From sequence record MT161459.1: a DNA stretch of 64,000 bases; one strand, 5' to 3'. This document shows positions 4,651-63,894 of the stretch, one piece after another. Under the pieces are notes generated by a model, which worked only from the letters and a program-made list of their open reading frames with translations, was not told the DNA's origin and ran no database searches. The stretch's first letter is position 1, and each line of letters begins with the position of its first letter. Both the position numbers and the translations under genes were made by a program.

Positions 4651-5636
4651 TCTTCAAAAGCTATCCTGAAATGGAAAACCACAGCAAGAGTCGCATCATC
4701 AACGCAGTGATCGAGCAAGGCCACGGTGCAGCAGATGTAGTTTGGTGCGCGCGCGAAAAGATTCACGGTACCAACTTCTCGCTCTGGTACAACGGCGTAG
4801 ATGACGTCCGAGCTGCAAGACGCACTGACTTCCTGGAGTTCGCTGACAAGTTCTACGACTTCACCAACATCGAACGTCGATACCAGTTGTGCGTCCAAGC
4901 TCTGTATCTGCGGTTGGGCCTGACTACTGAGGTGATGGCGGTGTACGGCGAGTATGCTGGGATTATGTCGAGTGGGAAGTGGATCCAAACCGGTATCGAA
5001 TATGGCCCTCAAGACTTCTACGCGTTCGACGTCATGGTAGATGGAGTTCCCATCGATGATGATGTCATGGAGTCTGCTTGCCTGGATTGTGGCATGAAGA
5101 CAGCTCCGCTGCTGAAAGTTGGGACCTTCAAAGAAGTGATGGGAGTTCCGAATGATCTGCAGTCCGTGGTCATGACCAAGAACGAAACTGGCACTTTCGA
5201 GATCGTCAAGGGCACCGACAACATCGCCGAAGGTTACGTTGCTAAGCCGCGCGTAGGTCGCCGGTTCTGGAACGGAGCTCGGGTAGCGATCAAGTGCAAG
5301 AACGAGAAGTGGTCCGAGACTGCTAAGGGCAAGGGCGTCAAGATTGAGGTCAAAGACATCTCCGATAAAGATGCGTCCATTCTGGCTATGCTGGGCGACT
5401 ACATCACCGAGAATCGTTTGAAGAACGTGCTCTCCAAGATCGGCGTACCGGAGACCAAGGAGTTCGGCAAGGTCATGGGCATGCTGTCCCAAGACATCAT
5501 CAAAGACTATGAGTCCGACACCGAGACTTTGGTCAAAGATGCTGACGAGCCAAGTCGAGTATGTCGGATGATGAATACTGCAGTGGGTAACTTCATTCGT
5601 CCTCTGTGGGTTGACATCTGCGACGGTGCATGGTAA
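4647..5636 (+). CDS. rnlB: RNA ligase 2
   Basis: Motif I REKIHGTNFS, YGEYAG, FYAFDV, motif IV EGYV, motif V AIKCKNEKWSE, and a C-terminal domain with NVLSKIG. Confidence 0.95.
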   Translation: MIFKSYPEMENHSKSRIINAVIEQGHGAADVVWCAREKIHGTNFSLWYNGVDDVRAARRTDFLEFADKFYDFTNIERRYQLCVQALYLRLGLTTEVMAVYGEYAGIMSSGKWIQTGIEYGPQDFYAFDVMVDGVPIDDDVMESACLDCGMKTAPLLKVGTFKEVMGVPNDLQSVVMTKNETGTFEIVKGTDNIAEGYVAKPRVGRRFWNGARVAIKCKNEKWSETAKGKGVKIEVKDISDKDASILAMLGDYITENRLKNVLSKIGVPETKEFGKVMGMLSQDIIKDYESDTETLVKDADEPSRVCRMMNTAVGNFIRPLWVDICDGAW

Positions 5637-50232: not shown

Positions 50233-50255
50233 TATTTAGCAGTGGCGCCTAAATA
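50233..50255. promoter_or_regulatory. Back-to-back divergent late promoters (CTAAATA on each strand)
   Basis: TATTTAG at 50233-50239 (drives gp48 leftward) and CTAAATA at 50249-50255 (drives gp4 rightward). Confidence 0.8.
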
Positions 50256-57336: not shown

Positions 57337-57810
57337 ATGAAAACGTTCTCGCAGTTTTGTGAGAACAAGCAAGGCGGATCATACGTTGCTGTCAAGTACG
57401 GCAACGTATGCTCAAATGAGATAGTCGCGACGTGCAGAGCTCTCGGGATTCCGAATCCGGTTGTGCCGGAAGATCTGCACACTACAATCATCTATTCGAG
57501 AACGGAGTTGACAAAGTACAAGGTTCCGCGTAACGTCAATCACGTCGTATCTGGCGAATTGACTCCAGCGGTATTCGAGACCTCTAAGGGGAAGCGAGTA
57601 CTTGTGTTGAAGTTGAACGATGAGTGGTTTGGACAACGTCACAGAGAAATCATGGATGCTAATAAACGAGCGACCTATGACTTCCCAGACTTTGTTCCTC
57701 ACATCACTCTCAGCTACGATCTTGGCGACTTTCCAGTTCCGACCAAGTTTGTTCTCGAAGAACCACTAACGGTGGTACGAGAGTATCACGAGGAGTTAGA
57801 TTGTGACTAA
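57337..57810 (+). CDS. acb1: gp57B / Acb1 anti-CBASS 2H phosphoesterase
   Basis: Two HxT motifs (DLHTTIIYS, PHITLSYD), G.YVAVK, and position after 57A. Confidence 0.9.
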   Translation: MKTFSQFCENKQGGSYVAVKYGNVCSNEIVATCRALGIPNPVVPEDLHTTIIYSRTELTKYKVPRNVNHVVSGELTPAVFETSKGKRVLVLKLNDEWFGQRHREIMDANKRATYDFPDFVPHITLSYDLGDFPVPTKFVLEEPLTVVREYHEELDCD

Positions 57811-58127: not shown

Positions 58128-58212
58128 GGGGATGTGGTGTAATTGGCAGCCACCCAAGTTTCAAACGCTTGTGTCGAAAGACGTCTCGGTTCGAGTCCGA
58201 GTATCCCTACCA
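58128..58212 (+). tRNA. tRNA-Leu(CAA)
   Basis: Cloverleaf with a long variable arm. CAAGT-TTCAAAC-GCTTG. CCA end. Confidence 0.9.
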
Positions 58213-58218
58213 AACTCC

Positions 58219-58304
58219 GCGAGATTAGCCGAATTGGTTTAGGCAGCAGATTTAAAATCTGTCGGCTTTGCCACCTGTGGGTTCGAGTCCCACATCTCGC
58301 ACCA
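58219..58304 (+). tRNA. tRNA-Leu(TAA)
   Basis: GCAGA-TTTAAAA-TCTGT, long variable arm, CCA end. Confidence 0.92.
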
Positions 58305-58317
58305 ACTAAGGAACACC

Positions 58318-58785
58318 ATGAAACAGAAACGTGTATTGTTGGGTACCTATGGTTATGCGTGTCGTAATGGCACCTTCATGATCATGGATCCAAAAGTTAT
58401 TGAAGCGTTCAATGAGCATCTCAAGGCCAACGGCCCATCTGCGATGTGCTTTGGTCAATCTCAGTTCAATTGCGCCGATGACGTGACTAAGTTTGAAACT
58501 GATCTGACTGACGTCATTGGCCGTCTGCACTCTGTGGAGTGGTTTGTCAATCCGAACAAGACTGTCAGCGTCTACGGTACCGTAGAACCTCTCAAGCACC
58601 CTGTGTGGAAAACCAGGAGTGTTGAGTTTAGCCTGCGGTCAATTGCTGATGTGATCCGAGAAGATATGATCAAGCCTGACGTTCCGCGTCAACGCGGCGG
58701 TAGATACGTAGTCATCAAACGCATCGTGTCTTGGGACATTCAAGATCCCGCACAATGTGCGCTGACGATCGATGATCTGAAATAA
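58318..58785 (+). CDS. Hypothetical protein, possibly a degenerate prohead-protease-fold protein
   Basis: SD AAGGA. Weak colinear resemblance to gp21 motifs by eye. Confidence 0.65.
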   Translation: MKQKRVLLGTYGYACRNGTFMIMDPKVIEAFNEHLKANGPSAMCFGQSQFNCADDVTKFETDLTDVIGRLHSVEWFVNPNKTVSVYGTVEPLKHPVWKTRSVEFSLRSIADVIREDMIKPDVPRQRGGRYVVIKRIVSWDIQDPAQCALTIDDLK

Positions 58786-58794
58786 GGAGTTGTC

Positions 58795-59046
58795 TTGTCT
58801 AAATACATCGGTATAGTAGACGGCAATGACAAAGATGGTTATAGCGGCTATGTAGCCAACCTCAATGGATCCTGCTTGTTTGCAGGATCCACGATGGATG
58901 AGCTAATTCAAGATGCTGACGAATCTGTTGTTGCTCATGTAGAGTTTTTGCTGGAGAATGACTTCAGTTTACAGCCAGACAGTATTGATCTGGTCATCAA
59001 TGACGATCAACAAGTAATCGTCATTCAATACCCCAAACCAATTTAA
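58795..59046 (+). CDS. Solo HicB-like antitoxin domain
   Basis: Y.GIV....DGY.G.V.NL.G.C...G.TMDEL...A.E.V..H.E.LLE pattern. SD AAGGAG with TTG start. Confidence 0.7.
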   Translation: MSKYIGIVDGNDKDGYSGYVANLNGSCLFAGSTMDELIQDADESVVAHVEFLLENDFSLQPDSIDLVINDDQQVIVIQYPKPI

Positions 59047-59054
59047 GGATTTGT

Positions 59055-59459
59055 ATGCCACGCTTTGTAGTCACTCCAGTATCAGGTTCCGCGCTGTCTC
59101 GTTTCATGATGAATACCGACAACGTGACTGGCCTCGTTGAAACTCACGATGGTCAGACTCTGATCCGTTTTGTGAATGCTGAAAGTCCGGAAGGTTCCAA
59201 AGGTCAGCTGATCCAAATCAAAGAGACCTTTGATCACATCCGTGCCAAGATGAAGATGGGGTACAAGCAACACGTTGCTGTTCACCCATACGACTCTCAA
59301 TATGCTCGTGTCTTGATTGACATTGAGAAGGTTGTAGGTCTGGCCGAAACTGTTCGCGGTGAAGTTGTGATGACCATCAAGGTCTCCGAGTTCTCCACTC
59401 CGGCTATCTTCGAAGTTGAAGAATCTTTCGATTACGTAGCTGAGGCTATCTCAGTTTAA
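59055..59459 (+). CDS. Protein with two tandem FlbD/SwrD-like domains
   Basis: Two ~65-aa repeats: (N/D)xxxVxGLxET...IQIKETFDHI / FEVEESFDYV. Confidence 0.65.
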   Translation: MPRFVVTPVSGSALSRFMMNTDNVTGLVETHDGQTLIRFVNAESPEGSKGQLIQIKETFDHIRAKMKMGYKQHVAVHPYDSQYARVLIDIEKVVGLAETVRGEVVMTIKVSEFSTPAIFEVEESFDYVAEAISV

Positions 59460-59499
59460 AGTTGAATCTCAGGAGATTATCGTTGATAGTCTCCTCATC

Positions 59500-59587
59500 G
59501 GAAGGTTGGCAGAGAGGCCGATCGCGACACTTTGCTAAAGTGTAGAACGGAAACGTTCCATGGGTTCGAATCCCATACCTTCCTCCA
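59500..59587 (+). tRNA. tRNA-Ser(GCT)
   Basis: ACACT-TTGCTAA-AGTGT, long variable arm, CCA end. Confidence 0.92.
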
Positions 59588-59607
59588 ATTTTACAGAGGA
59601 TTTTGTC

Positions 59608-59736
59608 ATGAAAAACATGAAACAAACAGGCTTTACCTTAATCGAAATGATATTTGCCATCTTCGGACTTGCTAGTCTGATCGGCGCTGGATTTGGGGTA
59701 TATGCCATCGTTCACTTTGTAACCAAATACTGGTAA
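59608..59736 (+). CDS. 42-aa prepilin-like peptide (class III signal peptide)
   Basis: SD GAGGA. MKNMKQTG|FTLIEMIFAIFGLASLIGAGFGVYAIVHFVTKYW*. Not in the ORF track. Confidence 0.8.
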   Translation: MKNMKQTGFTLIEMIFAIFGLASLIGAGFGVYAIVHFVTKYW

Positions 59737-59739
59737 CCT

Positions 59740-59907
59740 ATGTCAAGAACAACCCAAAATGAACTGGAAGCCCTCCAGGTTCAATCCGCTCGTATCCGTC
59801 TGGATCTCGATCGGGAATGTCTGAAACAGCAGCGTATCGAAACTGCCCGTTTAGTTGAAAACGCTAAGCGTGACAACATTCCGCTGACTGACGACCTGAA
59901 GCAATAG
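59740..59907 (+). CDS. Small coiled-coil hypothetical protein (55 aa)
   Basis: Manual translation MSRTTQNELEALQVQSARIRLDLDRECLKQQRIETARLVENAKRDNIPLTDDLKQ*. Confidence 0.6.
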   Translation: MSRTTQNELEALQVQSARIRLDLDRECLKQQRIETARLVENAKRDNIPLTDDLKQ

Positions 59908-59972
59908 TATCGTGCTCCTTCTAACGAGGGGGCATATCAAATCATCTTTGATATGCCAACGAGGAATACATC

Positions 59973-60245
59973 ATGGAACTGAATGAAATAGATTTCGTTA
60001 AAGATGTGCTGTGCGTACCGGATCGCTATGACCATTTCGCAGAAGCATTGGAAGTCATGGTCAAGGACTATTACAAAAGTAGTCGATCGATTATCTTCCG
60101 CGGATACCGCTTAGAGGAAACCTCCGTGCGTACATTCGCTAGCGTCAGCAACTGCTCATGCTGCTATCCAGATCAAGAAGAAGATAACTTCCCAATTGAG
60201 GAAGTGATCAAAATGATGTACACCTTGGGAGCGTTCGATGTTTAA
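59973..60245 (+). CDS. Hypothetical protein
   Basis: SD GAGGA, 90 aa, contains CSCC. Confidence 0.65.
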   Translation: MELNEIDFVKDVLCVPDRYDHFAEALEVMVKDYYKSSRSIIFRGYRLEETSVRTFASVSNCSCCYPDQEEDNFPIEEVIKMMYTLGAFDV

Positions 60246-60456
60246 GTATCTATTGGTTACCTACATGCAACTGTATGCTGGGATGAACAGTTCCATTGGA
60301 TCTCACTCCACAGAGAGTTACAAAACTCTGGCTGAATGCGAGGGAGCAAAGACTGCGTACATCCAGATGATGGAAGAGCACAAGATCAAAGATAGCGGTA
60401 TGATCGTCAAAAACATCGTCTGGGCGGATTGTAAAGCAATCTTCGTAGATCAATAG
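60238..60456 (+). CDS. Hypothetical protein
   Basis: SD GGAG. Overlaps the previous stop. Confidence 0.6.
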   Translation: MFKYLLVTYMQLYAGMNSSIGSHSTESYKTLAECEGAKTAYIQMMEEHKIKDSGMIVKNIVWADCKAIFVDQ

Positions 60457-60469
60457 TTTAGACACCGTG

Positions 60470-60476
60470 CTAAATA
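60470..60476 (+). promoter_or_regulatory. Late promoter CTAAATA upstream of a non-coding structured region
   Basis: Same GCTAAATA octamer as the structural-gene promoters. Confidence 0.65.
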
Positions 60477-60484
60477 CTAGACAA

Positions 60485-60983
60485 TAAGGATAACAGCGCG
60501 TTGATCTCTGCTCGTCACGTCAACGCCTTTTTAGAATGGAGAATCTCCCACATCCTGGATGTGTTCTAGTCGCCATTCAGCAGCCTTACTATACCTACCG
60601 CAAACGAGTTACAGCTCGGGTGGGAACTGTATGGAATAAATGTGGTTGCTTGCCAGCGTCAACTGCATCTGCAATAGCTGGTTGGACGGACCGTTCCACC
60701 TAACACGGTTGATAGGCTGTAACCTATCTTAGAGCGTCCCCGATGAGCCAGACTTGGCCTGGGGAACGCTTGCTAATGGGATCCAATTGGATGTCATTAT
60801 CAAGCGATGTTTAACTGCGCAAGAGCTTGTATGTGTCCGTCGCTAGAACGGCGGTACCTACCTTGGGCGGTCATGCTTCTAGGCACTGACATGGATAGAC
60901 ACTAACGTGATCTTGGAAAATCTTCGGATAGCTAGTACCGATACGCTAACAAGATGCTGCGGATCCATCAGTTTACAACGCTG
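60485..60983 (+). ncRNA. Candidate large structured ncRNA (~500 nt)
   Basis: No ORF in the track, many nested helices, a cUUCGg loop, and possible 5'/3' closing helix. Confidence 0.55.
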
Positions 60984-60990
60984 CTAAATA
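60984..60990 (+). promoter_or_regulatory. Late promoter CTAAATA
   Basis: GCTAAATA at the boundary between the two structured regions. Confidence 0.6.
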
Positions 60991-60999
60991 GATGTATAG

Positions 61000-61260
61000 T
61001 TCACTGGTGAGTGCAACTAAATGGGTATTCTCGCGACCTTCGGCTAGACTGTTGGAGCGTATGTTGATCAAAACAGCCCATTTAGTTGCGTTTACTTCGG
61101 ATACTAAAGCTAGTATGCTTAGTCTCTGTATACTGTAATTCGTAAGTAAGTAGTTGAAACAGTTAGTATGCTTCGGCGGAAGACTCGACTAAACAAACGC
61201 GAGGCGTGGGTATACAGAGATAAGTTTACTACGGAGGTGATCTGGCGTATACTTAAACAC
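61000..61260 (+). ncRNA. Candidate structured ncRNA (~260 nt)
   Basis: 13-bp helix 61013-61025/61077-61089, 11-bp helix 61123-61133/61210-61220, three TTCG motifs. Confidence 0.55.
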
Positions 61261-61261
61261 A

Positions 61262-61318
61262 AGGATGCTTACAGCAAACAAAACTCATTCTGCATATGAA
61301 ACGAATGCATCCTGTTAA
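61262..61318 (+). ncRNA. CAGCAA-motif hairpin element, copy 1
   Basis: AGGATGC-TTACAGCAA...GCATCCT-GTTAA. Confidence 0.5.
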
Positions 61319-61323
61319 AATCC

Positions 61324-61408
61324 GGAGGAGTGGCTCAAAGGTTGAGCGGCGGACCGTTAATCCGCGAGCGTATGCTCTATGTAGGTTCGAGTCCTACCTC
61401 CTCCGCCA
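61324..61408 (+). tRNA. tRNA-Asn(GTT) with a long variable arm
   Basis: GGAGGAG/CTCCTCC-G-CCA, GCGGA-CCGTTAA-TCCGC, variable arm GAGC-GTAT-GCTC. Confidence 0.85.
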
Positions 61409-61437
61409 AATTCGTCGAAAGACAACAAGAACGCATA

Positions 61438-61548
61438 GGGAATAATTCAGCAACAATACTTCTTTCCTTTATAAAAGAACGTCATTAAGGTTCGATTCCT
61501 TAACCAGCGCGTACTGGATGGTATAGGCGTACAAAGTATTCCCGTTAA
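61438..61548 (+). ncRNA. CAGCAA-motif element, copy 2, containing a T-arm-like hairpin
   Basis: GGGAATA-ATTCAGCAA...TTAAGG-TTCGATT-CCTTAA...TATTCCC-GTTAA. Confidence 0.5.
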
Positions 61549-61549
61549 T

Positions 61550-61624
61550 AGCCATGTAGCTCAGCGGTAGAGCACACCCCTGATAAGGGTGGGGTCAGCA
61601 GTTCAATCCTGCTCATGGCTACCA
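61550..61624 (+). tRNA. tRNA-Ile(GAT)
   Basis: CACCC-CTGATAA-GGGTG, CCA end. Confidence 0.93.
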
Positions 61625-61632
61625 ATTTTCAA

Positions 61633-61708
61633 GCTGATGTAGCTCAGTAGGTAGAGCAGCGCATTCGTAACGCGAAGGTCGCAGGTTCGATTCCTGTCCT
61701 CAGCACCA
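61633..61708 (+). tRNA. tRNA-Thr(CGT)
   Basis: Loop TTCGTAA, weak anticodon stem, CCA end. Confidence 0.85.
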
Positions 61709-61714
61709 ATTTGC

Positions 61715-61789
61715 GCCTCTATAGCTCAGTGGTAGAGCAGTTGCTTTGTAAGCATCAGGTCCTCGGTTCAATCCCGAGTGGGGGCTCCA
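61715..61789 (+). tRNA. tRNA-Thr(TGT)
   Basis: Loop TTTGTAA, CCA end. Confidence 0.9.
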
Positions 61790-61870
61790 AGTTGTGGGAT
61801 CTAGATGCCCCTTTGAAGCATCTGGCATGTAACTAGTTACATGAATGGTTTCTTGAGAGTGACCATTCAT

Positions 61871-61946
61871 GTGACGGTAGTTCAGTTGGTAGAGCTCCAG
61901 GTTGTGATCCTGGTAGTCACGGGTTCGATCCCCGTCCGTCACCCCA
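61871..61946 (+). tRNA. tRNA-His(GTG)
   Basis: CCAGG-TTGTGAT-CCTGG, C73, CCA end. The -1 base is T, not G. Confidence 0.92.
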
Positions 61947-61953
61947 AACACTG

Positions 61954-62026
61954 GGGATGTTAGTGAAATGGTGTCACTCCAGGGCTTTTCGCCTTGGCAA
62001 GTCCGTTCGATTCGGAACATCCCCCA
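61954..62026 (+). tRNA. Atypical tRNA-like gene (UUU anticodon, Lys-like)
   Basis: GGGATGT/ACATCCC followed directly by CCA. 6-bp anticodon stem, loop CTTTTCG, 4-bp T stem with TTCGATT. Confidence 0.55.
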
Positions 62027-62032
62027 TATTAC

Positions 62033-62106
62033 GGGAACGTAGTTAAACTCCAAACGCTGGTCACTGGGACCAGAGATGCGAGTAGTAAGCCTCGTCGTTT
62101 CCACCA
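62033..62106 (+). tRNA. Degenerate tRNA-like gene (loop CACTGGG, no TTC loop)
   Basis: GGGAACG/CGTTTCC-A-CCA, CTGGT/ACCAG stem, T-like stem GCGAG/CTCGT with loop TAGTAAGC. Confidence 0.5.
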
Positions 62107-62447
62107 GATCCGCTAGCAATAGCAGATATAAAAAGCTGACCGAGACCTCTTATTCAGGCAGGTGGTTTGATACCCACTGTGAATAATGTAGCTTCCTTTC
62201 CTGTAATAAGGTTCCAGACCGCGTCGGGTAAAAGGTTACATATCGAATCTGGTTGTTGTTTGGCAACAACCGATGTACAGTTAGAGGGTTGTAGCGTCGT
62301 CTAGCTATCTGTACGTTGAAGTTATCCTGACGAAAAGCTGTCGTATCCCGTAGAGGACTTTGGGTGATCATCACGATACGAGCATCAGATCACCGACCCA
62401 TTAAGTTGGCCGCTCGTGAAAACTAAACACGTGTCGCAAGGCACGAT
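62107..62447 (+). ncRNA. Candidate structured ncRNA (~340 nt)
   Basis: GCAA tetraloop hairpins at both ends and several internal helices. The only tracked ORF here is a short minus-strand shadow. Confidence 0.5.
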
Positions 62448-62449
62448 AT

Positions 62450-62525
62450 CGTGACATAGCTCAGCTGGTAGAGCAGGTGCTTCATACGCATCAGGTCAGT
62501 GGTTCGATCCCACTTGTCACGACCA
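62450..62525 (+). tRNA. tRNA-Met(CAT) (elongator or Ile2 type)
   Basis: GGTGC-TTCATAC-GCATC, paired C1:G72, CCA end. Confidence 0.9.
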
Positions 62526-62548
62526 ATTTCAAAACTCAAAGGTGTAAT

Positions 62549-62692
62549 ATGTTTGGAACTCTGTTTGGCGAATCCACTATTACCAAGATTGCTGACATCG
62601 CTGTTGGTGTTGCGGTAGGTGCAGTAGTCGCGGATGTAGCAGTTTCTGCTGCAGAAGAAGTAATCGAACTGATCACTGGTGAAGATGATTAA
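62549..62692 (+). CDS. Small hydrophobic hypothetical protein (47 aa)
   Basis: ATG at 62549 after AAAGGTG. The earlier track start lies inside the tRNA-Met. Confidence 0.55.
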   Translation: MFGTLFGESTITKIADIAVGVAVGAVVADVAVSAAEEVIELITGEDD

Positions 62693-62708
62693 TAATTGGG
62701 GTTCGCCC

Positions 62709-62847
62709 CAATTTCAAAACGATCTACCCTAACACGCCCATGGGACGAGCTAAGCACTCGTATGAAGCTAAGGACCGCAAGTCTGTGCAATCAAATGCTA
62801 GCCTGATAGATGGTCAGGTGGGGACGCGATAGATCGTTTTGAAATTG
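62709..62847 (+). ncRNA. Candidate ~140-nt multibranch ncRNA
   Basis: Perfect 18-bp closing helix CAATTTCAAAACGATCTA/TAGATCGTTTTGAAATTG enclosing several small hairpins. Confidence 0.6.
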
Positions 62848-62857
62848 TGGAGGATTT

Positions 62858-63073
62858 ATGTTTAAACTTGAATGTAGATCTCCGGAAGATTTGGCCGTTG
62901 CAAATGCGACCATAAATACCGGTATAGGGGAAAGATCAGCAGCTAATGGAAAGGCACTGTTTGTTTCTGGATTGACGTCCAGTAGACTTGCAGAAGTGAT
63001 GGTATTAGCTTACGCATATCCCGTAGATCCAACGAATGAAGATAGGAGTTATTTCGATGAGCACCGATGCTGA
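62858..63073 (+). CDS. Hypothetical protein
   Basis: SD GGAGG, 71 aa. Confidence 0.6.
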   Translation: MFKLECRSPEDLAVANATINTGIGERSAANGKALFVSGLTSSRLAEVMVLAYAYPVDPTNEDRSYFDEHRC

Positions 63074-63269
63074 CGCACGCGAAGGTCGCGGAGCTGCCAA
63101 CGGCGGTAACCAGAACTGGTATAACAGTCCATTGTGGGACAATATCGGTCCGAAGAAAAAAGTTTACGAAGCTGCTAAAGTAGAGGATACTACAGAGGTA
63201 GCCAAGCCTAAGACTGAAGAAGAATTGATTCGGGAAAGGCAACGTGCAGCGTTTAAGTACGCGTACTAA
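63057..63269 (+). CDS. Hypothetical protein
   Basis: SD AGGAG before ATG 63057 (MSTDADAREGRG...). Confidence 0.6.
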   Translation: MSTDADAREGRGAANGGNQNWYNSPLWDNIGPKKKVYEAAKVEDTTEVAKPKTEEELIRERQRAAFKYAY

Positions 63270-63278
63270 AAGAACAGA

Positions 63279-63354
63279 TCTCCGTTCATCTAGCGGTCTA
63301 GGATATCGCCCTTTCAAGGCGAGTACACGGATTCGAATTCCGTACGGAGAACCA
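63279..63354 (+). tRNA. tRNA-Glu(TTC)
   Basis: TCGCC-CTTTCAA-GGCGA, CCA end. Confidence 0.92.
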
Positions 63355-63360
63355 AATTGT

Positions 63361-63439
63361 TGCGGGTTGGAGGAGTCTGGTCGTCCTCGCGAGTCTCATA
63401 AGCTCGAGATCGGTGGTTCAAATCCACCACCCGCATCCA
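63361..63439 (+). tRNA. tRNA-Met(CAT), initiator-like
   Basis: CGAGT-CTCATAA-GCTCG, T loop TTCAAAT, CCA end. Confidence 0.85.
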
Positions 63440-63486
63440 ATTTAACGGTGATACGCTACCGTAAGTGCGACTTTGAAATAGTTTTT

Positions 63487-63569
63487 GGTCGATTAACCGG
63501 TAATTGGTAGCCGCGCGGTCTGTAAAACCGTTCTTATGACTCTTGGTTCAAGTCCAAGATCGACCACCA
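63487..63569 (+). tRNA. tRNA-Tyr(GTA)
   Basis: GCGGT-CTGTAAA-ACCGT, variable arm, CCA end. Confidence 0.92.
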
Positions 63570-63643
63570 AATTCCTATGGAAGCTAAAGCCACGAAGGCA
63601 AGACGAGCGTTGAAAGCTATACGCAAAAACCTTCCCGAATTCA

Positions 63644-63718
63644 GGTGCATTAGTATAATGGCTATTATTCGCGACTGTCTATCGCAAGATACGAGTTCGA
63701 TCCTCGTATGCACCGCCA
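63644..63718 (+). tRNA. tRNA-Asp(GTC), copy 1
   Basis: GCGA-CTGTCTA-TCGC, G73, CCA end. Confidence 0.88.
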
Positions 63719-63724
63719 AACAAC

Positions 63725-63811
63725 GGAGAGCTAAGAGATAAAGAGTCTCAGTCCCTCGTAATGGGACCGCTTTACAAGCCTTTCTGGAATCGAAGCCAGA
63801 GCACTCCACCA
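63725..63811 (+). tRNA. Degenerate class-II tRNA-like gene (GUA in loop)
   Basis: GGAGAGC/GCACTCC-A-CCA, GTCCC-TCGTAAT-GGGAC, long variable arm, non-canonical T loop AATCGAAG. Confidence 0.55.
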
Positions 63812-63817
63812 TACAAT

Positions 63818-63894
63818 AGTGATGTAGTTTAGTTGGTTAAAATCCCGGCCTGTCACGTCGGAGAGCGCGGGTTCGAGTCCCGTCATCACTGCCA
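63818..63894 (+). tRNA. tRNA-Asp(GTC), copy 2
   Basis: CCGGC-CTGTCAC-GTCGG, G73, CCA end. Confidence 0.93.

Follow-up and report, generated by a model that had tools for sequence, protein, structure and literature searches.

The DNA examined here is a stretch of 64,000 nucleotides (nt), referred to as the window, from Aeromonas phage Ahp1_CNU-2021 (MT161459, Straboviridae, 218 kb; 100% identity), a T4-like phage; window position 60400 corresponds to record position 214717. A preliminary description of the window had flagged positions 60470-60983, here called region A, as a highly structured, late-promoter-driven noncoding RNA of about 500 nt in an island of transfer RNA (tRNA) genes. Region A looks like a structured RNA at a lineage-specific locus without annotation, undescribed and without a match in Rfam. 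We assign a probability of about 0.5 to the reading that it is the upstream, lineage-expanded part of a noncoding multi-hairpin region of ~840 nt (~60482-61323), which fills a locus conserved among Aeh1-like phages in the order small open reading frame (ORF), structured RNA, tRNA-Asn, and which would be transcribed together with the tRNA operon as its structured leader or as a stable by-product. This reading is carried by the absence of coding, by synteny, by local helices with compensatory change, by a covarying RNA at the same place in a sister lineage and by homology to the second domain of that RNA at 61112-61230. The observation made in the preliminary description is confirmed. Its interpretation as a large late-expressed noncoding RNA is supported as far as the noncoding, plus-strand structured and undescribed character of the stretch is concerned, but not in its boundaries, its late-only expression and its status as a discrete unit.

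Region A lies within the tRNA island (15 tRNAs at 58128-63894, detected by ARAGORN in the window), downstream of homologues of gene 1, 57A and 57B. ORF72 (72 amino acids, 60238-60456) is the last annotated gene before it and tRNA-Asn at 61324 is the next feature. The 867 nt separating the two carry no annotation in MT161459, and the ORF-free structured stretch extends from 60457 to the tRNA at 61324. The features of this gap are collected in Table 1.

Consistent with the earlier observation that no ORF of 60 amino acids or more is present, the longest ORF in region A has 55 amino acids (60536-60703) and others have 25-40. Ten stop-free pieces were searched separately in Pfam and PHROG and gave no credible family, and a reading of the region as a pseudogene was rejected on this ground. 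Across 17 natural variants of the gap, no ORF keeps its position, frame or length. Several indels of 1-3 nt fall inside candidate ORFs, and frameshifting indels at 60600, 60637, 60761 and 60784 were found between variants that are 93-98% identical to the window. In contigs that span the gap, gene callers placed no gene within it; they called short ORFs only where truncated contigs had been cut. Coding by this stretch is very unlikely, and the noncoding status proposed earlier is upheld against the alternative of conserved short peptides.

The search of Rfam including GOLLD and ROOL that had been proposed was carried out, and the family remains undescribed. At gathering thresholds, a cmscan of the whole window against Rfam 15 detected tRNAs alone. 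When 60200-61400 was scanned permissively, with E values up to 10, tRNA-Asn and two sub-threshold matches outside region A appeared, one to the Dictyostelium class I RNA at 61263-61314 and one to a small nucleolar RNA inside ORF72. Neither scan matched GOLLD, ROOL, RNase P, transfer-messenger RNA, signal recognition particle RNA, 6S RNA, group I or II introns, ribozymes or riboswitches, in agreement with the earlier failure to recognise an RNase P, transfer-messenger, signal recognition particle or ribozyme core by inspection. With ARAGORN and the Rfam tRNA model, nothing tRNA-like was detected in 60200-61323. Comparison of the gap with 50,697 phage records by blastn and megablast matched the source record only, and a literature search found no description of an RNA at this locus. 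Two resemblances were rejected: a hammerhead-like GATGAG at 60743, whose core is incomplete and absent from the variants, and a likeness of 61000-61026 to a type I-F CRISPR (clustered regularly interspaced short palindromic repeats) repeat, which was judged by eye only to be a coincidence.

Evidence for a structured RNA also comes from the syntenic locus of related phages. In the nearest genomes, Aeh1, PX29, Ah1, avDM12-TAAL, phiWae14, phiAS5 and AsFcp, an unannotated gap of 573-585 nt before tRNA-Asn is preceded by an ORF of 73-74 amino acids. ORF72 is the orthologue of the 74-amino-acid ORF of PX29, Aeh1, avDM12 and phiWae14 (BLASTP 9e-8, full-length alignment, conserved Cys and SH positions). 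In the relatives, the gap begins with a structured RNA of 275 nt that has two domains and 13 helices. Among its seven distinct sequences, 24 of the 71 pairs change on both sides, compared with 5.8 in shuffles (0/500) and 0-5 when the partners are slid, and 98.2% of cells are paired. Judged by this strong covariation, the 275-nt sister RNA is a genuine structured RNA; it is unannotated in every record and, searched with the PX29 gap, has no match in Rfam, ROOL included. Domain 1 (~140 nt) consists of a closing helix around four hairpins, among them P3 with a CCACC loop, and domain 2 is a long hairpin of ~115 nt with a CUUCGG apex. An invariant hairpin of the sister RNA, CACUAA-loop-UUAGUG, contains the late motif CTAAATA. 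The RNA is followed by two or three units, each a GTTTAC-type promoter and then a hairpin. The loops of its helices P2 (GGUGG) and P3 (CCACC) are both invariant and could make a loop-loop contact.

Domain 2 of the sister RNA is detectable in the window. A covariance model of the Aeh1-type ~275-nt RNA built in this analysis (R1) matched 61112-61230 with an E value of 0.0027 for the whole window and 3.8e-5 within the gap, and matched the variants L222 and L210 with 19.3 bits (E = 4.7e-5). No other part shows homology to the sister-lineage RNA with statistical support, and this one lies outside region A. For region A itself, the relation is less direct. The pattern GGACGG, hairpin with CCACC loop, TTGAYAG occurs once in the window (0 expected) and once per syntenic gap in every relative, a pattern that was chosen post hoc. 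Between the window and the relatives, the P3 helix shows a compensatory difference (CCGU/ACGG and CCAGC/GCUGG). On the other hand, Smith-Waterman alignment scores only ~2.5-3 standard deviations above shuffles, at the candidate P3 site R1 gives -0.7 bits and no significant alignment to domain 1, and a model of the region A core (R2) finds nothing significant in the relatives, leaving the Aeh1-type RNA undetected. Homology of region A to domain 1, based on a short motif and synteny, is plausible but unproven. Alternatively, the sister RNA would correspond to hairpin B together with 61112-61230, and region A would be an extra upstream module. The pairing GACGGA:UCCGUC and a loop-loop contact GGUGG:CCACC were considered for region A and set aside as untestable or contradicted by variants reading GGATTG.

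The two loci share their place between an orthologous small ORF and tRNA-Asn, the plus strand, promoters of the GTTTAC type whose spacer holds CTAAATA, conserved-loop small hairpin RNAs downstream, domain 2, and the motif of the candidate P3 at 60684-60715. They differ in size, with ~640 nt in the window compared to the 140-nt domain 1 of the relatives, and in the promoter and hairpin B that the window carries between region A and domain 2. Also, the relatives have no blastn similarity to the window, and the covariance models do not align region A significantly. A third lineage is represented by the Logan contig L268. Here, downstream of a 73-amino-acid orthologue (30% identity), a small inverted repeat containing CTAAATA comes first, then a ~170-nt RNA that resembles domain 1 and lacks domain 2, three promoter-plus-hairpin units and tRNA-Asn. 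In this RNA, the P5 loop GGAACCCC.UUG.GCUAA is kept while the stem is changed from CAGUG/CACUG to CUCG/CGAG. The RNA at the locus ranges from ~170 to ~750 nt among lineages, the version in the window being the largest. In IMG/VR, protein searches with ORF72, ORF90 and 57B gave nothing, and a profile of ORF72 and the 74-amino-acid ORFs found known isolates only; the profile found none in GTDB genomes. A motif scan of IMG/VR gave, among the matches listed, almost exclusively chance matches, and a 277-kb contig with a motif match in its tRNA island (L029) was dismissed after neither R1 nor R2 matched it.

The small hairpin RNAs downstream form a family with a 6-7-bp stem that is different in each copy and a large loop with conserved YUNCNGCAA.CAAA.AC, often followed by UCAUU...AUAUGAAA. 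The window has one copy, the Aeh1-type phages have two and L268 has three, and every copy comes with a GTTTAC-N17-TAnnAT promoter of its own, whose spacer often carries CTAAATA. In Rfam, the family gives the sub-threshold Dictyostelium match only.

Region A exceeds chance structure in parts, not uniformly. Over 521 nt, the predicted fold reaches -169 kcal/mol (z = -2.7; 2 of 100 shuffles equally good). The block 60733-60806, made up of hairpins H-c and H-d, stands out with z = -4.5, followed by 60534-60580 (z = -3.2), 60581-60640 (z = -2.4) and 60490-60533 (z = -2.0). All helices that the preliminary description had listed are present where it had placed them. The UUCG hairpin is among them, but is weakened by its closing pair 60922/60927 of C(UUCG)G, which becomes A.G in 5 of the 17 variants. 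Counted by eye, four CUUCGG-capped hairpins occur in the 867 nt.

Natural variation allowed the local helices to be assessed. Where blastn, as proposed earlier for collecting homologues, had returned the source record alone, metagenomes yielded the 17 natural variants, all different and covering the complete gap, with mutual identities of 93-99.7%, and these show compensatory pairs. Two ENA metagenome contigs were obtained by motif scan and many Logan/ENA contigs by exact and near-exact ORF72 look-ups. In H-a, the pair 60605/60618 is C-G in 13 variants, U-G in one and U-A in three; the pairs 60596/60622 and 60597/60621 change to G-U only, and 60619 swaps its partner jointly with 60599 and 60604, (C,A,G) versus (G,U,A). 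The pair 60692/60707 is C-G in 11, U-A in three and C.A in three variants. In H-c, 60741/60761 is C-G in 10, U-G in one and U-A in four, and the inner hairpin is replaced wholesale in six variants with a hairpin still formed. In H-d, 60773/60800 is C.U in the window, A-U in one variant group and C-G in another, and 60769/60804 is C-G or U-G. About ten further pairs change to G-U only. In hairpin B, the pair 61014/61089 is G-C or G-U. Variation in the 60534-60579 hairpin is confined to the loop and internal loop (60555, 60566-69), its stems being invariant. In the 5'-proximal hairpin at 60494-60532, the loop position 60519 changes from G to A (U-G to U-A), one variant breaks one pair, and the U-run is 3-5 long.

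For a 167-nt core, the covariation score was 0.073 compared with 0.054 in shuffles (0/500), in a test in which related sequences can outscore shuffles without any structure. In the same core, 10 cells are altered on both sides, compared with 3.9 in shuffles and 0-5 with the partners slid. The variable columns avoid the stems of the minimum free energy fold predicted from the window alone (odds ratio 0.44, p = 0.0016). Four local helices are kept through two-sided changes or G-U intermediates, which favours an RNA of the plus strand. The long-range helices lie in invariant columns, so covariation is uninformative there. This holds for the helix at 60885-96/60963-72, against which RNAalifold favours a competing long-range pairing of 60680-90 with 60964-75.

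The boundaries 60470-60983 are arbitrary. CTAAATA flanks region A at 60470-76 and 60984-90. Nolan et al. 2006 (PMC1524935) gave CTAAATA, beginning at -12, as the late-promoter consensus of Aeh1; GCTAAATA matches this motif and looks unlike the TATAAATA of T4. The promoter tables of the same study hold no entry at the Aeh1 locus. In the window, CTAAATA occurs 19 times versus 4.9 expected (~4x), a count attained in no shuffle. Many of the copies precede the Shine-Dalgarno sequence and ATG of baseplate or tail genes by 20-40 nt, usually after a G. CTAAATA is therefore a credible late promoter, and the Aeh1-type consensus seems to extend to Ahp1. A divergent, back-to-back pair of CTAAATA was noted at 50233-50255.

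The description of region A as late-promoter-driven holds in so far as its CTAAATA is the published Aeh1 late consensus and is enriched in the window. Expression in the late phase only is not supported, since each flanking copy is nested in the 17-nt spacer of a sigma70-type promoter; because of this arrangement, the region is probably expressed both early and late. The -35 elements of these two putative promoters, P1 and P2, are of the T4-early type. For P1, the predicted starts are ~60482 (late) and ~60492 (early). Its hexamers and CTAAATA are invariant in the 17 variants, while four spacer positions vary. P2 is invariant and has the same architecture as GTTTACAGTCACTAAATAGTAGTGTATAGT of the Aeh1-type phages. 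The hairpin before each downstream promoter carries the -35 hexamer of that promoter within its 3' strand. At 60983, which falls inside P2, neither a terminator nor another 3' end was found, so that the discrete transcript of ~500 nt proposed earlier is not supported. Nor does 60470-60983 hold as a unit: the ORF-free structured stretch runs on to tRNA-Asn and includes two further strong hairpins (z -3.8 and -4.5).

From the arrangement of these elements, we infer the following course of events. The region would be transcribed rightwards on the plus strand into the tRNA cluster, from promoters that join early-type -35/-10 elements for host sigma70 with the phage late motif, so that the RNA would be made early and late. 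Hairpins a few bases past each predicted start may protect the 5' ends; the one at 60494-60532 would either serve in this way or act as a weak intrinsic terminator of the ORFs before it. Structured segments could be released by RNase P, cutting at the 5' terminus of tRNA-Asn, in combination with RNase E or III, and the released RNA might be a functional analogue, not a homologue, of the T4 species 1 and 2 RNAs. Stable RNAs in the tRNA clusters of T4-type phages have been known for fifty years and are of unknown function. In T4, rnaC and rnaD (species 1 and 2) are co-transcribed with the tRNAs. Like the Ahp1 element, they lie in the 57A-57B-tRNA neighbourhood, and they are annotated as small stable RNAs. 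They differ in being 139 and 119 nt long and in their position at the 3' (far) end of the cluster; rnaC, moreover, has a tRNA-like T-arm, whereas 60200-61323 holds nothing tRNA-like. Homology was rejected, as R1 (with filters off) and R2 gave no meaningful match in T4 70908-71171. In position and kind, rnaC and rnaD are analogues of the Ahp1 element and not homologues.

Several observations weigh against a structured leader or by-product of the tRNA operon. A leader of 840 nt is unusually long for a tRNA operon. The hairpin and U-run at 60494-60532 could end P1 transcripts after ~45 nt. The 58-nt block at 60814-60871 is unchanged in 17/17 variants except for one single-base insertion in one of them, although its fold z is only -1.2; such an invariant block suggests some role tied to the sequence itself, for which a passive leader offers no explanation. 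The claim that the stretch is highly structured is borne out in some blocks (z to -4.5) but not in 60640-60732 (z = -1.6), 60812-60884 (-1.2) and 60884-60975 (-1.0), which are no better than shuffles. The minus strand of the 521 nt gives the same z as the plus strand, and the strand call of RNAalifold is undecisive, as the minus strand's own consensus equals the plus strand in percent paired. The variants form a mosaic and span little divergence (at least 93% identity). Of the pair types that change, 16 of 31 remain paired on the plus strand versus 7 of 28 on the minus strand, and about half is the level that transitions alone would give by chance. Some changes break the proposed structures: a symmetric 2x2 change at 60779-80/60793-94 in five variants opens an internal loop in H-d, GGACGG reads GGATTG in three variants, and 60922 C->A breaks the UUCG closing pair in five. 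Finally, the window and L222 differ in region A (6.6% mismatches, plus indels) about as much as they do in other intergenic gaps, and conservation alone therefore shows no constraint.

Among the alternatives, the one that survives best, although we hold it to be unlikely, is a discrete, trans-acting large noncoding RNA of a new class. It would be released or transcribed separately from P1, closed by the end-to-end helix, and target a partner from host or phage, serving for instance as a decoy or scaffold within an accessory island rich in anti-defence genes. The invariant 58-nt block, the wholesale replacement of the inner H-c hairpin with its stem kept, the predicted early-plus-late promoter of its own and the lack of an Rfam match would all suit such an RNA, as would neighbours such as Acb1 (57B) and a HicB-like ORF. 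RNAalifold also predicts a possible closing helix, CAGC/GCUG at 60494-97/60980-83. However, the next promoter overlaps this helix, and no 3' end or terminator lies at 60983. All supported helices are local and the long-range ones lie in invariant columns; a single globular, ornate fold is not supported. The element shrinks to ~170 nt in L268 and to ~140 nt (domain 1) in the Aeh1 type, which means that the family as a whole can do without most of the 500 nt, and no partner is known.

The large structured noncoding RNAs GOLLD and ROOL, which have no known function and often lie beside tRNA genes in phages or prophages, are among the closest known systems. GOLLD is included in Rfam 15. Region A resembles them as a large structured noncoding RNA without known function. 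It differs in having no Rfam match and no long-range covariation for multi-stem junctions or pseudoknots, and the Ahp1-locus element is confined to one small phage clade. A related and slightly more doubtful proposal is that region A is an enlarged member of a new phage RNA family, grown by accretion from a core of ~140-170 nt, as in L268 and the Aeh1 types, to more than 500 nt. Such an RNA would be expressed throughout infection from fused early/late promoters and act in trans as a decoy or scaffold for a host nuclease, a defence protein or a phage protein, beside the small conserved-loop hairpin RNAs.

It is improbable that the region has no function at the RNA level and is filler in a recombination-prone tRNA island, made of promoters, one terminator and leftover palindromes or decayed genes, with the compensatory changes hitch-hiking among a few recombining haplotypes. 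The gap-like divergence and mosaic pattern fit this view, as do the great variation in size among lineages, the small number of covarying pairs (just 3-4 among sequences at least 93% identical, with the caveat of the test given above) and the pair-breaking changes, to which 60707 in three variants adds to those at 60922 and 60779-80/60793-94. Against it stand the strong covariation of the sister-lineage RNA at the same locus, G-U intermediates that fit the plus strand, the depletion of variation from stems predicted by a single sequence, the CUUCGG-capped hairpins counted above, and the absence of protein remnants.

A DNA-level element is less probable still, be it a T4-type replication origin (promoter and unwinding region), a recombination or homing target, or a set of protein-binding palindromes. 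Three to four promoters within 800 bp, near-perfect palindromes such as 60767-60806, the equal fold energy of both strands and the frequent breaks of metagenome contigs at hypervariable hairpins would be expected of such an element. The substitutions are strand-specific, however, with G-U tolerated but not C-A in the plus/minus comparison given above; UUCG tetraloops stabilise RNA and not DNA, and the cumulative GC skew shows no inflection. That one or more short peptides are encoded, for which the ORFs of 55 and 25-40 amino acids would be candidates, is hardly credible in view of the frameshifts among close variants, the lack of a conserved ORF and the lack of family matches.

The locus adds a second RNA family, unrelated to the stable RNAs of T4, to the same tRNA-cluster neighbourhood. 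It combines a covariation-backed RNA of 275 nt, the larger version in the window and an array of small hairpin RNAs with predicted promoters. The unannotated gaps of 570-870 bp in a dozen deposited genomes are not empty, and the locus documents putative promoters in which the spacer of an early sigma70 promoter encloses the Aeh1-type late motif CTAAATA. The culturable Aeromonas phages offer a tractable system, in which natural size variants of ~170 to ~840 nt could serve to study tRNA precursor handling, RNA stability and interference with host factors.

Table 1. Features of the ORF72 to tRNA-Asn gap and of related loci (window coordinates unless a sequence is named)
Feature	Position	Strand	Basis or remark
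Promoter P1, sigma70-type TTTAGA-N17-GACAAT, CTAAATA (60470-60476) in spacer	60457..60485	+	putative; read from sequence, below scan threshold
5'-proximal hairpin CAGCGCGTTGA / TCAACGCC, then run of 4-5 U	60494..60532	+	z = -2.0
Hairpin GCGTTGA/TCAACGC	60498-60504 / 60520-60526	+	sequence
Bipartite hairpin, outer GAATGG/CCATTC, inner CACATC-CTG-GATGTG (60549-54/60558-63)	60534..60579	+	z = -3.2, 86% of ensemble
Stem-loop H-a, outer CCTACC/GGTGGG, inner CGAG-TTACAG-CTCG	60594..60624	+	variant alignments
Candidate P3, motif GGACGG-[ACCGT/ACGGT helix, CCACC loop]-TTGATAG	60684..60715	+	motif and compensating pair
Hairpin GATAGG-CTGTAA-CCTATC	60711..60728	+	invariant save one variant with one broken pair
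Hairpin H-c, AGCGTCCCC (60733-41) / GGGGAACGCT (60761-70), inner GCCA-GACT-TGGC	60733..60770	+	variants
Near-palindromic long hairpin H-d, CGCTTGCTAATGG..ATCC-AATT-GGAT..CATTATCAAGCG	60767..60806	+	variants
Invariant block with hairpin CCGTCG-CTAGAA-CGGCGG (60837-42/60849-54)	60814..60871	+	17 variants
Helix ACTGA(CA)TGGAT / ATCCATCAGT (60885-96/60963-72), enclosing ATC-TTCG-GAT (60920-29)	60885..60972	+	sequence only, z = -1.0
Candidate end-to-end helix, CAGCG... with CAACGCTG	60976-83 (3' side)	+	sequence, invariant columns
Promoter P2, TTTACA-N17-TATAGT, CTAAATA (60984-60990) in spacer	60972..61000	+	promoter scan, 10/12 consensus matches
Hairpin B, 13-bp perfect stem GCAACTAAATGGG/CCCATTTAGTTGC, UUCG-capped inner arm	61006..61096	+	z = -3.8; begins at predicted P2 start
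Homologue of Aeh1-type RNA domain 2, long hairpin, CUUCGG apex	61112..61230	+	covariance model R1; z = -4.5
Promoter P4, TTTACT-N17-TATACT	61225..61253	+	promoter scan; overlaps domain 2 3' strand, as in relatives
Small hairpin RNA, GGATGC/GCATCC stem, large conserved loop CUUACAGCAAACAAAAC...	61262..61314	+	immediately 5' of tRNA-Asn
tRNA-Asn (GUU)	61324..61408	+	heads downstream tRNA cluster; anchors syntenic locus
Sister RNA loci	L002 4394-4668, L003 4438-4712, L004 4302-4572, L005 4586-4857, L006 5374-5650, L269 721-996, L270 2726-2999		
Small hairpin RNAs in other lineages	L004 4668-4721, ~4791-4853; L268 871-923, 977-1026, 1075-1131		

Further observations concern the tRNA island. According to precomputed annotations of identical proteins on related contigs, the 57B homologue (57337-57810) belongs to the Acb1 Pfam family, directed against the cyclic oligonucleotide-based antiphage signalling system (anti-CBASS), and an ORF of 83 amino acids (58795-59046) has a weak match to HicB-like antitoxins; these neighbours place the tRNA island among likely counter-defence genes. 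The genes for tRNA-Lys (61953-62025), tRNA-Glu (63279-63354), a second tRNA-Met(CAU) (63361-63439) and tRNA-Tyr (63487-63569), all detected by ARAGORN, are absent from the GenBank annotation or labelled as pseudo-tRNAs. A minus-strand ORF of 139 amino acids (61700-62119) runs across four tRNA genes and is surely spurious. Between tRNA-Lys and tRNA-Met lies another gap without an ORF (424 nt, 62026-62449), which shares 90% identity with L222 and has many indels. The tRNA-Asn/tRNA-Ile spacer (61409-61549) is 100% identical between the window and L222, whereas adjacent gaps differ by 7-10%; it contains a T-arm-like AAGGTTCGATTCCTTAA at ~61489-61507, probably from a decayed tRNA. Two metagenome variants, L249 (~1369-1505) and L250 (~1101-1235), diverge at precisely the tRNA-Asn 5' end (window equivalent 61321 onward), where an ORF starting ATGAATGTCGATCAG... 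takes the place of the tRNA. This point of divergence indicates that the RNA region and the tRNA cluster are separable modules.

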